Shown in pieces: positions 1 to 6,430 of a DNA stretch of 7,353 nt (position 1 is the first letter of the stretch; the number at the start of each line of letters is the position of its first letter). Both the position numbers and the translations under genes were made by a program. The notes beneath the pieces were generated by a model that saw only the letters and a list, made by a program, of their open reading frames with translations, searched no databases and was not told the DNA's origin. This DNA is from Zygnema circumcarinatum SAG 698-1b (Eukaryota > Plantae > Zygnematophyceae), in contig JBBHKD010000065.1 in the NCBI GenBank assembly GCA_037447605.1, forward strand, positions 1 to 7,353. Direction: 5' to 3'.

Positions 1-213
1 CCTTTACCGGGAAGTAGGGACGGTGTGGGTATGGACTTACGATCGCAGTCTTCTGTGACACCTGAGGGGGCATGACTCCATCCTGCGTCTTTGTCGATCG
101 ACTTCGGCAAAGATGGTGCATTTTGCACCGACCTCACGAAGCCATTTGGGGCAGCGAGATTGCAGTTGTATGTTGACAAATTATTGGAGCGACATGGTCT
201 TGGTCGAGGAAAT
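1..213 (+). pseudogene. pol: Ty3/Gypsy integrase catalytic core, N-terminal part (frameshifted)
   Basis: Across shifting frames: GVGMD(L) with first catalytic Asp at 34-36, VTPEG/GHDSIL, VFVDRL, KMVHFAPT, LYVDKLLERHGL, EEIV. This is the usual Gypsy integrase order (MDF...GxDxILVxVDRLxKMVHF...HGLPxxIVSD). Ends at the TRIM-like insertion. Confidence 0.85.
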
Positions 214-344
214 TGTAGCAACGGTATACATGGGGTGTATGACCTGAAATAGCACACATCGCGAGTTTGCCTTTTAATGGTAAAACACCCAGGTGAATGC
301 AGGGAGGTCTGTGAGTTAGAACCTGCTTGAGCGGGTTAGTTACA
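214..344 (+). repeat. 5' LTR of TRIM-like copy A
   Basis: TGTAGC...GTTACA (5/6 inverted terminal match). Shares ATACATGGGGTGTATGACCTG, TTGCCTTTTAATGGTAAAA, CAGGGAGGTCT, GAGTT(A/C)GAACCTG and GCGGGTT with 528-657. Confidence 0.8.
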
Positions 345-516
345 TTATTATCGAACTGGGGTATTTGCGATCCACCCTAAAACACCCCGTGATCTCACGA
401 GCATGAGTGCGGTTGGCGGAAGTGCGAGCGGTACATCTTGCCATGTGATGAAGGCTTGAGCGGCTTCGTGAAAACCCTTAGTGTTGTGCTTTCGAGGGCG
501 AGCCGCGGTTTGGAGT

Positions 517-527
517 GAAGGGAGGAA
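517..527 (+). other. Polypurine tract of TRIM-like copy A
   Basis: GAAGGGAGGAA immediately 5' of the TGT that starts the second repeat; equivalent to GGGGAGGAA at 4090-4098 in copy B. Confidence 0.8.
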
Positions 528-657
528 TGTAGCAGGCGGTGGCATACATGGGGTGTATGACCTGGTACTTACGTCAGTTGCCTTTTAATGGTAAAAGCAC
601 TTGGAGTGTCACAGGGAGGTCTCACGAGTTCGAACCTGGCGGGCGGGTTTATTCACA
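528..657 (+). repeat. 3' LTR of TRIM-like copy A
   Basis: Starts TGTAGC after the PPT and ends TTATTCACA; direct repeat of 214-344. Confidence 0.8.
578..640 (+). promoter_or_regulatory. tRNA-like type 2 Pol III promoter module (A-box/D-arm-like and B-box/T-loop-like) inside the LTR
   Basis: TTGCCTTTTAATGGTAAAAG can fold as a D-arm-like hairpin with an AATGGT(A) loop (578-597). It is followed by variable-loop-like GAGGTC and by GTTCGAACC (628-636), matching B-box GWTCRANNC. GG-to-B-box distance is 37 nt (nominal tRNA G19-G53: 34). No convincing acceptor or anticodon stem, so not a functional tRNA. Equivalents at 267-323 and 3827-3881. Confidence 0.6.
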
Positions 658-1555
658 GTAGTGTCGTAGTGATCCCACGATTCACGGCCATTTTGGGCGG
701 AAGTGCTCAAAATCGTTGGGACCAAGCAGGCGTTGAGTACAGCTTTCCACCCGCAAACCGATGGCCAGACGGAACGGGTGAACAGGATCCTGGAGGATTA
801 CCTCCGGCATTATGTGGGACCTACCCCGGATGGGTGGGATGAACTGCTCCCAGTGGCAGAGTACGCCATCAATAATGCTTTCGAGAGTCCATGGGAATTA
901 CCCTTTCTTCTTGAACTTTGGCGGCATCCTCTAAATCCACGCAGCGAGGATGACCCACGATCCGTGGAGACATGGGCGTCCACGAACCCCAGTCCTTGGG
1001 GCTGAGAGGGGCCCCGATGGGACTCAACCTCATGATCGAGATCTTTTGTCAGAGCTAATATGCATTTGCGGAGAACACGGCAGAAGACCTGCTAAGCGGC
1101 CCGATCGCGACAAAAAGGCCTATGTACACCTTCGCGAAGGAGATGAGGAATGTTGCGTCTGGCTGAACTTGAGACTCAAAGCTTATGGCGGAACACGTAA
1201 GCTGTGGCCCCGCTTCATCGGACCTTTTAAGGTCGTGAAGCGAATCAATGATGTCGCTTACAGGTTGGATTTACCATCCCACATGAAGGTGCATCCGGTC
1301 TTTCATGTGGGCTTGCTAAAGGTCTACCGTAGCGATGGGAGAATCCAGCCACCTCCCCCACCAGTGGAACTTGAAGGTGAACTTGAGTACGAAGTTGAAA
1401 CCATTCAAGCCCACCGTCTTGTGAGACAGGGTCGATCTTCCCGTCACGAATACCTCGTGAAGTGGTTGGGCTATGGGGTTGAACATAGCACATGGGAAGC
1501 CGAGGGCAACTTAACCAATTGCCAGGAGCTCATCAACTTTATCTTTGGGGGCTGA
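658..1555 (+). pseudogene. pol: Ty3/Gypsy (chromovirus) integrase: core C-half, GPF motif and C-terminal chromodomain
   Basis: Frameshifted DPRF(T)GHF, then VLKIVGTKQALSTAFHPQTDGQTERVNRILEDYLRHYV (catalytic Glu 772-774), WDELLPVAEYAINNA, KLWPRFIGPFKVVKRINDVAYRLDLP (GPF 1220-1228) and the chromodomain. Split over ORFs 703-1005 and 950-1555 with a garbled linker; neither ORF start is likely a real start. Confidence 0.93.
1385..1534 (+). other. Chromodomain (aromatic-cage type)
   Basis: EYEVETIQAHR...EYLVKWLGYGVEHSTWEAEGNLTNCQELI, with Tyr at 1388-1390, Trp at 1463-1465 and Tyr at 1472-1474. Confidence 0.92.
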
Positions 1556-2541: not shown

Positions 2542-3412
2542 TTGAGCTCCACATCGACCAAAAGTGATCCTCATTCGCATCCCCTGCCATTCCTCCCTGC
2601 CAATGTCAACGGCGCCAGCTCCTCTGGCACTGCTCCACCGGTTACCCCCCCTGTCAGGAGAACTTCCGTCCTCCCTCCTTCCACGGGTCATCCATTGGGA
2701 TCCACGCCTGAGGAGGAAATTGACGATCTCAATGAGGAGGAGCCGACAGCGGCGCAGCCAGAGCCGAGAGCACCAGCGACAGAAGAGATGCACGTCAACC
2801 CTCCCCATCGCCCTTGGGCAGCCCGTTTCTACCCCGGGCAGCTGACGGCGGCCACCCCCAAACCAGAACTGGCTTATCCACGATTGAGCGCATGGTTAAA
2901 TTGACTCATGGGGAAACGAGCTAAGATGGCATTACCTTGTCACGGTTAGTGCAAGCTGGTTCAGTCGCAGCCGTAGTTAGCAAGCTGGCGGCTTGATCAG
3001 GAGCCCGCCTGTGGCCTCCGGACCCACCATGGCACCTCCTCGGACATCCCCTTCGCGAGACACTTACACCACATAGCCCACGGGTGCAAAGAGACGGTTC
3101 GCTCTCAGCCATCCTCCTGCGGTCAGATCCTCCCCTCGATCCCAACACCCAGCGTCACGAATTATTGTCAATGTATGGCTAAGCGGTCATCCCGGTAAAG
3201 CCATGATAAAACCCACGGGGAAATTTATCATGCGGTTACATCCAAGCGGTAATAGAAGAGCTGCGGGGTTAAGTTGGACAAGACGCGAGCCCGTTCCCAG
3301 ATATGTGGGGGTTGAGGAGCCTACGCGAAGGATTAAGGCGTGCCAAAGATCGCTCGGCCTTGGCGAGATGGGAGCCACCGGTGAACGGTCATCCGCGGCC
3401 CGGCGACGCTGA
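2542..3412 (+). pseudogene. gag: Degenerate gag-like region
   Basis: Pro/Glu-rich low-complexity ORF 2542-2904 ending KPELAYPRLSAWL. Then, in broken frames: ASWF, KFIMRLHP (cf. Gag xFIxGLxP), EPVPRYVG (cf. EPxPME(V/I)G) and CQRSLGLGEMG (possible eroded zinc knuckle). Sits between a putative LTR and RT. The motifs are individually weak. Confidence 0.45.
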
Positions 3413-3903
3413 TATCTGTTGAGCTCGGTGGCTCATTCGCGATGGGAGCCACGAATGCGACGCCTTTCGTCTTCGGTTGCACTTATCTGCTGGCGGGGAC
3501 GGTACTCGCCCCATCATCCTCGAGTCCCTTGCCTCCGCATACCACAAACGCCCGCGCCGAGGCGCGGTCTCTACCGAGATCACCGTAGCCATGCGATTCG
3601 TGACCCCCGTTCTTCATGGATCGGCTGATTCGTCTGGAGTAAGACTCCCTACGCTCACCAGAGTCCTGCTCTCTGGTGACGAAGAACTTTTACTTGCGCC
3701 CGGTGATGTTGCCTGACTTTCCCCACGAGATCATTGGTGATGAGAATTAGGTACGGAAATAGAGGTCGGATCACGATTGGGGCCATTTGTAGCTATACAT
3801 GGGTTGTATGTAGTGCTACGTCGCGGTTGCCTTTTAATGGTAAAAGCGGTGTGTGTAGATGCGGAGTCTGATGTTCGAACCACGCGGCGGGTTTATTCTA
3901 CGG

Positions 3904-3920
3904 TGGTATGTCGAGCCAAG
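3904..3920 (+). other. Primer-binding-site-like sequence (initiator tRNA-Met type), eroded
   Basis: TGGTATGTCGAGCCAAG just after the 5' repeat resembles the canonical TGGTATCAGAGC(C) PBS. The equivalent region in copy A (345-360) is more decayed. Confidence 0.55.
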
Positions 3921-4089
3921 GGGCCCGGTATTTGCAATCCACCTAAAAACACCGTGATCTCGAGGCATGAGTGCGAGGAACGTTCCTTAGTGGCCAAAGG
4001 GGGCTAAGGTAGTCCATGTGTTGAAGGAGCTTGAAGCGGCTGCTGGTGAAAGGCTCCTTGAGGTGAGCTGAGGGCAGGCAGGTTTAGGT

Positions 4090-4098
4090 GGGGAGGAA
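4090..4098 (+). other. Polypurine tract of TRIM-like copy B
   Basis: GGGGAGGAA immediately before TGTAGC at 4099. Confidence 0.8.
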
Positions 4099-4421
4099 TG
4101 TAGCGGCAGCTTTACATGGGTTGTATGGCCTAGTCTTTACATCAGCGGTTGCGTTGTGGAGTGGGAGGTCGTGTTGAACCTGGCAGGGCGGGTTTTGTTA
4201 CGCAATGATCTCTCGGACGTCGAGCATTCACAGATGCAGCCAAAGTCTTTTAGCGTAGAAATCATCAGTTTTAGCCGCGACGTTACCGACATCGTGAGAC
4301 CCGCGATGGTGCACCACAGCCGATACGGGGATGCACCTCCGTGATGACCATGACTCCCTGCGGCTTTTCGCGGCTCGGCGGTAGATGTGACGACGGTCGA
4401 TGAAGCATTAGGCTGGCCGAC

Positions 4422-5050
4422 TTGATGGAACAGAGGAGAAGGGCTTGGGCGGCCAGTAGATTACGCTGGCCGGATGGCACACTACGCTTACGTGGAGACT
4501 ATCGGGCGGAATGCCGCGAAGTGGGATCCTATACATTCACGGGGCGTGGACTGATTCTCCGGCGTCTCCATGATGACCGGTGGTTCTCGGCGCCCGGCAT
4601 GCGAAATCCTTGGCAGTCCCCTGCGACGGTACGTCGGTTGCAAGGCCGGGGGCCGCTTGCGACCCGCAGCGCTTCGTGCGGTGGGCGGTGCTTCCCTTTA
4701 GTTTCAGAATTCGGCCAGACTCACCAGCGCACGGCTGACCAGGTGTTCGGCCCCTGTCGTGCCTTCTGCGAACCTTACGTGGATGATGCTTCGATCCACA
4801 GCAAGGACTGGTCCTCCCACCTGCAACACATTGACCAAGTCCTGCAACAGCTCATCAGTGCGCGTCTGAAGATTGCACCCAAGAAGTGCAAATGGGGCCA
4901 CCAGGAGATCACTCATCTCGGGCACCGCCTCGGCATCAATGGCCTGAAACCATCACTCGATAAGATTGAAGCGATTGCCCTTATGCCGATTCCACAGACC
5001 CTCACTCAGCTCAAGTCTTTCTTGGGACTCACCTCCTTATCGCGGTTCGT
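4422..5050 (+). pseudogene. pol: Ty3/Gypsy reverse transcriptase, degenerate
   Basis: AWAAS...PDGTLRLRGDYRA (cf. SPWAAP...DGxLRLCVDYRxL), WFSAPGMRNPWQSP (cf. FSxLDxRSGYWQxP; first catalytic Asp reads Gly), YVDD at 4776-4787, HLQHIDQVLQQL, KKCKWG..EITHLGH, DKIEAI..MPIPQTLTQLKSFLGL. The MPFG..N.PAT.QR motif is scattered over three frames at ~4691-4735. Confidence 0.92.
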
Positions 5051-5219: not shown

Positions 5220-5420
5220 CGCTTCCCGTTGAACCTCTACCAGCATGGAGGATTGGAAGCGGTTTGTCCGTATAGCGGTACCCACGTGTCCTCTCGACCG
5301 AATGGGTGGGAGGGTGTACAACGTCTGATGCTCACCGCATTCGCTGGCCTTGGCGGCGCGGCAGCCGTCTGTCGATTACGCGTGGGGATCTACTGCAGCG
5401 GCGGGAGTCGGCCCGGCGGT
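5220..5420 (+). pseudogene. Possible RNase H remnant
   Basis: Follows RT at the expected place. LYQHGGLEAV echoes LxTDASxxGLGAVL, and SSR...YNV...LTA echoes YxSRxL...YxxxELExLA. Needs assumed indels; weak. Confidence 0.3.
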
Positions 5421-5778: not shown

Positions 5779-5982
5779 AGTGAGAATGTGAGCGCCCTGG
5801 ATTCCGCGTGTGTGTGGAGTAGTAAAGCCATTTCGTAGTTTCAGCGACGCAGCGGCGTCGAGCTCACGTGATAGCGGGGCTTCGGCGATAATCCCGGTCA
5901 AAGTCCCGCTCCAGTTAGCGGGGGCGGCGGGAACCCTTCCGTCGCAGCCCTCGCCCGCTCTCTGTGACACCAGCCTCAGTAC
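5779..5982 (-). repeat. 3' UTR of the minus-strand chromovirus copy, homologous to ~1540-1748
   Basis: GGACTTTGACCGGGATTATCGCCGAAGCCC (minus) vs GGACTTGACGGGATTGCTCGCTGAGCCC (plus, ~1620-1648), and shared CACAT(T/C)CTC before the PPT. Confidence 0.6.
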
Positions 5983-6430
5983 AAGTTGATGAGCTCACGG
6001 CGGTGGTTAAGTTGCCCTCTGACACCACGTAATGCTTATGTTCAACCCCGTAGCCCAACCACTTCACGAAGGTATTACGTGGCGGGAAGGCGACCACTCC
6101 CTTGTCTGGGTGGGCTTGAATGGTTTCAACCTCATATTCGAGTTCACCTTCAAGTTCCACTGGGGTGGGAGGTGGTTGGATCTTCCCATCGCGGCGGTAT
6201 GGCCTCAACAAACTCACATGAAAGACCGGATGCACCTTCATGTGGGATGGTAGAAATCAACACGTAAGCGGCATCATTGATTAAACTACGACCTTAAAGG
6301 TCTATGAAAGCGAGGGGCGACTACGTGTTCAGCCATAAGCTTTGAGTCTCGGATTACGTACTTAGCAACACCTCGCCAAGCCTTCGTTGAAGGTAGGTTA
6401 GATCACCGATTGACGGTTAGCATATAGGCC
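5983..6430 (-). pseudogene. pol: Second chromovirus integrase C-terminus plus chromodomain, inverted
   Basis: MKVHPVFHVSLLRPYRRDGKIQPPPTPVELEGELEYEVETIQAH...FVKWLGYGVEH...EGNLT. 38-bp exact match of 6215-6252 (reverse complement) to 1272-1309; GAGACTCAAAGCTTATGGC is shared. Frameshifted AYANR..D.TFNEG..VLLST.N.RLK extends homology to ~6430. Confidence 0.92.

Follow-up and report, generated by a model that had tools for sequence, protein, structure and literature searches.

The window analyzed here, which is the whole 7,353-nucleotide stretch of DNA from Zygnema circumcarinatum SAG 698-1b (contig JBBHKD010000065.1), contains four homologous LTR copies located at 214-344, 528-657, 3788-3902 and 4099-4202 (nhmmer E 1e-11 to 2e-3). 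Inspection of their arrangement reveals two repeat-spacer-repeat units, A (214-657) and B (3788-4202), whose spacers are also homologous to one another (pairwise alignment; nhmmer E 2e-20). Every repeat starts with TGTAGC, and the repeats end in ..ACA for unit A and in ..ACG for unit B. Unit A comprises 131 + 183 + 130 = 444 nt and unit B comprises 115 + 196 + 104 = 415 nt, where no ORF of at least 70 aa is contained entirely in either one. The features of both units and of the chromovirus sequence flanking unit A are as follows, with the 5' and 3' LTRs referred to as A5, A3, B5 and B3.

1-213, forward strand: chromovirus integrase core upstream of TRIM A, degraded and frameshifted (translation ...VFVDRL.. 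/ ..ERHGLGRGN).
214-657, forward strand: TRIM copy A, 444 nt, with 5' LTR, PBS remnant, internal region, polypurine tract (PPT) and 3' LTR (self-similarity and similarity to copy B).
214-344, forward strand: 5' LTR of A (A5), TGTAGC...GTTACA, with an A-like box at 267-285 and the B-like box mutated to GTTAGAACC at 315-323.
345-356, forward strand: decayed PBS remnant of A, TTATTATCGAAC, homologous to TGGTATGTCGAGCC of copy B (pairwise alignment).
360-396, forward strand: best-conserved internal block of A, 88-89% identical to 3927-3961 (repeat families D3 and D12).
517-527, forward strand: polypurine tract of A, GAAGGGAGGAA, flush against the 3' LTR (sequence read).
528-657, forward strand: 3' LTR of A (A3), TGTAGC...TTCACA, the best-preserved LTR.
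571-646, forward strand: tRNA-like module of A3, with acceptor-like CGTCAGT/GCGGGCG, A-like box, AGGTC, B-like box and GGGTTTATT tail.
578-596, 617-621 and 628-636, forward strand: parts of the A3 module, namely the A-like box (TTTT at 583-586), AGGTC and the B-like box GTTCGAACC.
658-1555, forward strand: remaining integrase (..PRFT.., HPQTDGQTERVN), SH3_Tf2-1 domain and chromodomain (Pfam PF24626, 1e-20; PF00385, 7e-15).
3788-4202, forward strand: TRIM copy B, 415 nt (pairwise alignment, nhmmer).
3788-3902, forward strand: 5' LTR of B (B5), with an A-like box at 3827-3845, GGAGTC, a B-like box at 3873-3881 and a TACG end.
3904-3917, forward strand: PBS-like TGGTATGTCGAGCC of B, 1 nt past the 5' LTR (sequence read).
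4087-4098, forward strand: polypurine tract of B, GGTGGGGAGGAA, flush against TGTAGC (sequence read).
4099-4202, forward strand: 3' LTR of B (B3), with the A-like box deleted, the B-like box minus one base (GTTGAACC, 4173-4180) and the tail GGGTTTTGTTACG.

Units A and B are two TRIMs, an identity established by their LTR pairs, PPTs and PBS-like site, and by the insertion of A within an integrase gene. The PBS is presumably of the initiator-Met type, an assignment based on the plant PBS TGGTATCAGAGC. TRIM A splits the integrase frame of a chromovirus, where the reading before it runs to ..ERHGLGRGN (1-213), resumes at 663 as VVVIPRFT.. and continues into HPQTDGQTERVN; excising the 444 nt together with 5 nt restores the frame. 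For each copy, three of five positions agree between the 5-mers on either side (GAAAT/GTAGT for A, CCATT/CAATG for B), the copies being too old for exact duplications. Given an identity of 66% between TRIMs A and B, and of 62-71% between the LTR pair of a single element, the copies are old, and both are broken and inactive. The LTRs inside one element are no closer to each other than are the LTRs of different elements. Positions 578-640, for which a preliminary description of this DNA had proposed a tRNA-derived Pol III promoter module, lie within the 3' LTR of a TRIM that is old and dead.

Without any retrotransposon, a repeat-spacer-repeat pattern could also come from local tandem duplication or from faulty assembly, either of which would account for start-to-start spacings as alike as 318 and 317 nt in the two pairs, as well as for LTRs that are no more alike within an element than between elements. 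We consider such an origin barely credible, as two copies 3.5 kb apart share both LTRs and an internal region, in each a PPT abuts TGTAGC and a PBS-like site follows the 5' LTR, and TRIM A interrupts the integrase frame precisely. Within the internal region of the TRIMs, the block at 360-396 / 3927-3961 retains 88-89% identity versus 66% between whole copies, which makes it a candidate packaging, dimerisation or primer-interaction signal.

A protein homology search with the integrase C-end and chromodomain returned homologues that share both domains, the best match being 64% identical, and no copy from the same genome was found among them. Downstream, 1758-1932 may be the 3' LTR of this chromovirus, where a PPT-like GAGGAGTAA is followed by TGTGGC...GAGACA. 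This candidate LTR holds a perfect 5-bp hairpin, CACAG (1874-1878)/CTGTG (1888-1892), around GGTCGAACA, which resembles a T arm, and its segment 1817-1900 is called by ARAGORN at 75% of thresholds only. Homology between the candidate chromovirus LTR and the TRIM LTRs was considered and rejected, the similarity not being significant (p 0.03-0.35), and no second copy of 1758-1932 lies within the window. On the reverse strand, 5915-6350 carries the integrase C-end and chromodomain a second time, inverted, and is 87% complementary to 1272-1415. Together with an RT fragment at about 4725-4932, these pieces describe the window as a nest of chromovirus fragments.

We next turn to the motifs within the LTRs, for which the observations of the preliminary description largely proved accurate. 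The A-like 19-mer reported as identical in three LTRs, TTGCCTTTTAATGGTAAAA, lies at exactly three places (267, 578 and 3827), with no further copies at up to 3 mismatches and none in 200 shuffles. The B-like boxes are likewise placed as reported, with GTTCGAACC at 628 and 3873, GTTAGAACC at 315 and GTTGAACC at 4173; an unrelated extra GTTGAACC lies at 5228. The spacings between TGG, taken at its second G, and the B-like box are indeed 35, 37 and 33 nt, and the A-like box is non-canonical with a T4 run, as had been cautioned (TTTT at 583-586, 272-275 and 3832-3835). GAGGTC was said to precede the B box like a variable loop, and it is present at 304, 616 and 4165, whereas the B5 LTR has GGAGTC instead. 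The proposed D-arm-like fold holds only loosely: RNAfold gives a small hairpin in which UUGCC pairs with GGUAA around a 7-nt loop, with the GG inside the stem. None of the module folds is more stable than shuffled sequence (z -0.9 to +0.4).

The sequence comparison indicates that the four motif occurrences are one ancestral LTR feature rather than four independent events, because the four stretches in which they lie are homologous LTR copies. The 19-nt run of identity in three LTRs exceeds a composition-aware column model with P about 2e-4, a value that is post hoc and depends on an uncertain alignment; in the fourth LTR (4099-4202), the A-like box is gone by deletion. Columns of A/T are better conserved (65% versus 42%). 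CpG or base-composition bias was rejected as the full cause of the conserved 19-mer, as it leaves the 19-column run unexplained and transitions are not dominant among the differences. The B-like box is exact in two LTRs, carries a C to A change in another and lacks one base in the remaining one. That is to say, the B-like box is not specially conserved, being intact in only two of the four LTRs. In each of the four LTRs it starts exactly 30 nt ahead of the LTR end, and the GGGTTT(T/A) tail that follows has only TTT in three of the four. A second island, ATACATGGGKTGTATG, is kept in all four LTRs outside the tRNA-like part and is equally conserved. ATACATGGGKTGTATG forms a small hairpin; near the LTR 5' ends, the small hairpin ATACA-TGGGK-TGTAT recurs at 227-241, 545-559, 3796-3810 and 4113-4127, where that of A3 has a z of -1.8 against shuffles. 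Metagenome matches to the 19-mer numbered 14, every one of them with unrelated flanks, and were set aside as chance matches.

Several of these patterns bear on the possibility that the family is an ordinary TRIM driven by Pol II, in which the resemblance to tRNA boxes is a coincidence and the 19-mer serves some other purpose. Being a small hairpin, or else an island rich in AT within a GC-rich LTR, the 19-mer could work as a core-promoter element, bind a protein or act as a signal in the RNA. A coincidence of this kind would sit well with an A-like box that is non-canonical and contains TTTT, with a B-like box intact in two of four LTRs, and with the equal conservation of ATACATGGGKTGTATG in all four LTRs outside the tRNA-like part. 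Moreover, GTTCGAAC is its own reverse complement, GTTCGAACC would be just a palindromic 8-mer plus a C, and a single loose B box is expected to turn up in 0.8% of random 130-mers. The motif set taken as a whole is harder to obtain by chance. Among random 130-mers that share the window's dinucleotide composition, a fraction of 1.2e-4 contains a loose A-like box followed after 28-42 nt by a loose B-like one, and when AGGTC is added 3-8 nt before the B-like box, none of 200,000 random 130-mers matches; the true odds are weaker, because the patterns were written after the data had been seen. For the ordered set that includes the closing stem and T-rich tail and lies near the LTR 3' end, chance is 1e-4 or less, and no TATA box or other recognizable Pol II element was seen in the LTRs. 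We therefore regard an ordinary Pol II-driven TRIM with fortuitous boxes as unlikely, while still carrying appreciable weight.

In the search for a match to a tRNA model, no LTR scored above noise with Rfam, ARAGORN or two purpose-built covariance models. ARAGORN at default settings called no tRNA in the window, and Rfam searches returned no tRNA match at E<=10 for inputs of 7353, 481 and 451 bases or for the 94 bases of the best copy. At 75% of thresholds, ARAGORN called 570-648 as tRNA-Thr(tgt), with an acceptor stem of fair quality; the same setting gave 14 further calls across the window. The two covariance models were built from phage T5 and E. coli tRNAs using gap-free seeds. The noise matches of model R2, which carried the bacterial CCA end, were driven by 'stem + CCA', so the CCA-free model R3 was used instead; no LTR was listed on the forward strand by the CCA-bearing model. 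R3 aligns 571-646 end to end with 6.7 bits (E about 1), matching U8, G10, C11, UGGU, AGCAC, GGUC and GUUCGAA in order, and this is the sole full-length alignment among the top R3 matches in the window. R3 scored unseen real tRNAs at 30-68 bits and produced 8 matches of 7.3-11.4 bits on 88 kb of unrelated DNA, which places the 6.7 bits at noise level. Full-length R3 alignment of A5 and B5 yielded 0 bits or less. That every tRNA detector remained at noise level is a point in favor of a chance resemblance.

The sensitivity of these detectors was gauged with the 120-nt LTR of Helenus-1_SMo from Selaginella moellendorffii, taken from the supplement of Kojima 2024 (PMC10886601). ARAGORN at default settings recognizes the intact Helenus-1_SMo LTR as a tRNA. 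Once decay was simulated with 15-20% substitutions and 3-4% indels, approximately the level implied by the LTR-pair identities of TRIMs A and B, default detection fell to 1% or less. For this reason, the negative tRNA searches carry little weight.

Two other tRNA-like signals were noted elsewhere in the window. The top match of the CCA-bearing model lies at 3369-3433 on the reverse strand (11.1 bits, E 0.12), where a 7-bp stem AGCCACC/GGTGGCT, a D-arm-like stretch and a CCCA end occur without a T arm. It is flanked by a direct repeat, CG(A/C)GATGGGAGCCAC, at 3364-3378 and 3438-3452, and is probably noise. Of the pseudo-calls that ARAGORN made across the window, the highest-scoring is a tRNA-Leu(aag) at 3610-3684, called at 85% of thresholds and located about 100 nt upstream of TRIM B, and neither Rfam nor the purpose-built covariance models support a tRNA there.

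TRIMs with tRNA-like LTRs are already known. Helenus is such a group (TRIMp3), recorded from fungi, animals and Selaginella (Kojima 2024, PMC10886601). Its tRNA likeness was found using Censor against tRNA and SINE2 sequences, and most cases are predicted by tRNAscan-SE; most Helenus LTRs keep a box A of TRGCY and YGG and a box B of GGTTC (Kojima 2024, PMC10886601). Within the LTR, the tRNA-like part occupies the 3' portion in sense orientation, and a short run rich in T and a terminal CA come after it (Kojima 2024, PMC10886601). The same study ties short element size to Pol III processivity, and Pol III use by Helenus is not validated (Kojima 2024, PMC10886601). The preliminary description had named Ajax, in molluscs, as a tRNA-bearing family, which swaps the two names: the tRNA type is Helenus, and Ajax is a TRIM with 5S-derived LTR sequence from two nemerteans only (Kojima 2024, PMC10886601). 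It had also asked for novelty to be checked. TRIMs A and B are not a novel kind of element, as tRNA-bearing TRIMs are Helenus (Kojima 2024, PMC10886601).

The Zygnema TRIMs share much of their anatomy with Helenus-1_SMo. Both measure less than 1 kb, their LTRs of about 120-130 nt begin in TGT and finish in ACA, and both have a PBS right after the 5' LTR (tggtatcggagc in Helenus-1_SMo versus TGGTATGTCGAGCC in TRIM B), a PPT flush with the 3' LTR and a target duplication that is probably 5 bp. As in the published Helenus consensus sequences, a module in tRNA order occupies the 3' part of the LTR ahead of a T-rich tail, and a layout that copies published Helenus counts against coincidence. There are also differences. 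The Helenus-1_SMo LTR is a tRNA to default ARAGORN, whereas the Zygnema TRIM LTRs are not; its internal region is 85 nt versus about 183-196 nt in TRIMs A and B; and it has no significant sequence similarity to the TRIM LTRs, where Smith-Waterman comparison with its tRNA-like part gave p 0.05-0.86. The absence of significant similarity to Helenus-1_SMo is what a fortuitous resemblance would also give. The Helenus box consensus is missed in all four LTRs, although closely, with TTGCC and TGG placing a T where R is expected, and alignment of the A-like box needs a 2-3 nt insertion. In place of GGTTC, the LTRs have AGTTC (A3), AGTTA (A5), TGTTC (B5) and TGTT-G (B3). The host also differs: it is a freshwater streptophyte alga, and the groups listed for Helenus do not include streptophyte algae. 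None of the papers searched reported Helenus-like tRNA-bearing TRIMs in algae. At the end of the internal region, 499-533 (TTCGAGGGCGA...GAAGGGAGGAA and then TGTAGC) resembles the scallop elements Helenus-1_ArIr and Helenus-2_MiYe by eye. This likeness is probably convergence or coincidence, given that chance alone should yield an exact 11-mer match in 87 kb of consensus sequence.

Comparison with other small elements helps to delimit the type. Cassandra is a TRIM with a 5S rRNA-derived Pol III promoter in its LTRs (Kalendar 2008, as cited in later work). TRIMs A and B resemble it as TRIM LTRs holding an internal, here putative, Pol III promoter taken from a small-RNA gene, and differ in that Cassandra carries 5S sequence with box A, IE and box C. 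Ajax is similarly a TRIM with a small-RNA-derived LTR, putatively so in TRIMs A and B, and with 5-bp target duplications, probable ones here, and differs in being 5S-derived, not tRNA-derived; Rfam searches at E<=10 gave no 5S rRNA match of the Cassandra/Ajax type. The description of the locus as a tRNA analogue of Cassandra is supported in part: the repeats are TRIM LTRs that carry A-like and B-like boxes in tRNA order and spacing, AGGTC and a T-rich tail, and no tRNA model matches them above noise. The tRNA-derived SINEs (SINE2) have a comparable degenerate tRNA head, A-box to B-box starts about 45-50 nt apart and a mobile-element promoter. They are moved by LINEs and are without LTRs, PBS and PPT, whereas TRIMs A and B have all three in an LTR-retrotransposon context. 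Ordinary TRIMs (TRIMp2 of Kojima) agree in size, LTR length, PBS, PPT and nesting in other retrotransposons, and differ in having no small-RNA-like promoter module.

Taken together, we lean toward reading TRIMs A and B as decayed copies of a Helenus-type TRIM, and descent of their LTR module from a tRNA is moderately favored. That active relatives use Pol III is a more tentative prediction, and we would place it on the doubtful side. For such a family, the elements would have been moved in trans by Ty3/gypsy chromoviruses, using a tRNA-primer binding site and a polypurine tract and leaving a 5-bp target duplication. In each LTR, the 3' two-thirds would most likely be a decayed tRNA-type gene unit of the Helenus (TRIMp3) design, ordered as acceptor-like stem, A-like box, AGGTC variable loop, B-like box and T-rich tail. 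In active relatives, TFIIIC would bind the LTR-internal B and A boxes, with transcription by Pol III beginning some 10-20 nt ahead of the A-like box, at about LTR position 35-45. The resulting RNA would read through the PBS, internal region and PPT into the 3' LTR, and may then be packaged, reverse-transcribed and integrated by chromovirus proteins. The TTTT in the A-like box lies about 15 nt past the expected Pol III start, where it is a possible terminator, and this argues against Pol III use. Tails with only TTT in three of four LTRs, and folds no more stable than shuffles, likewise count against a working Pol III unit in this subfamily.

The same run of T residues bears on a further alternative, in which a tRNA or tRNA-derived SINE landed in the LTR of an ancestral TRIM and stayed as a passenger that was never a promoter, the family being transcribed by Pol II. 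A passenger would be consistent with TTTT in three A-like boxes, which would stop Pol III early, with boxes that are off consensus, and with the unvalidated status of Pol III use by Helenus (Kojima 2024, PMC10886601). The exact 19-mer in three diverged LTRs instead suggests constraint in an active lineage, and lengths of 415-444 nt agree with the short element sizes that Kojima connects with Pol III processivity. We consider a passive insertion distinctly improbable, and a Helenus-type TRIM stays our preferred reading.

A bolder extension of the Helenus-type reading would treat the 19-mer as a functional signal, rather than a decayed A box, in a TRIM-chromovirus system of streptophyte algae that is driven by Pol III, with TTTT as a Pol III stop that sets the R/U5 border and with the coding chromoviruses of this genome sharing the tRNA-like LTR module. 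We rate this extension as very unlikely; were coding chromoviruses to share a Pol III module, the expectation that autonomous partners must use Pol II would be contradicted. Old and broken as they are, TRIMs A and B add little in themselves. If the LTR module is truly tRNA-derived, Helenus-type TRIMs would extend from one lycophyte to a streptophyte alga, and the green lineage would then have two cases of LTR elements with a borrowed Pol III promoter, Cassandra and this family. For genome annotation, LTRs of this kind may be mistaken for tRNA pseudogenes or SINEs.
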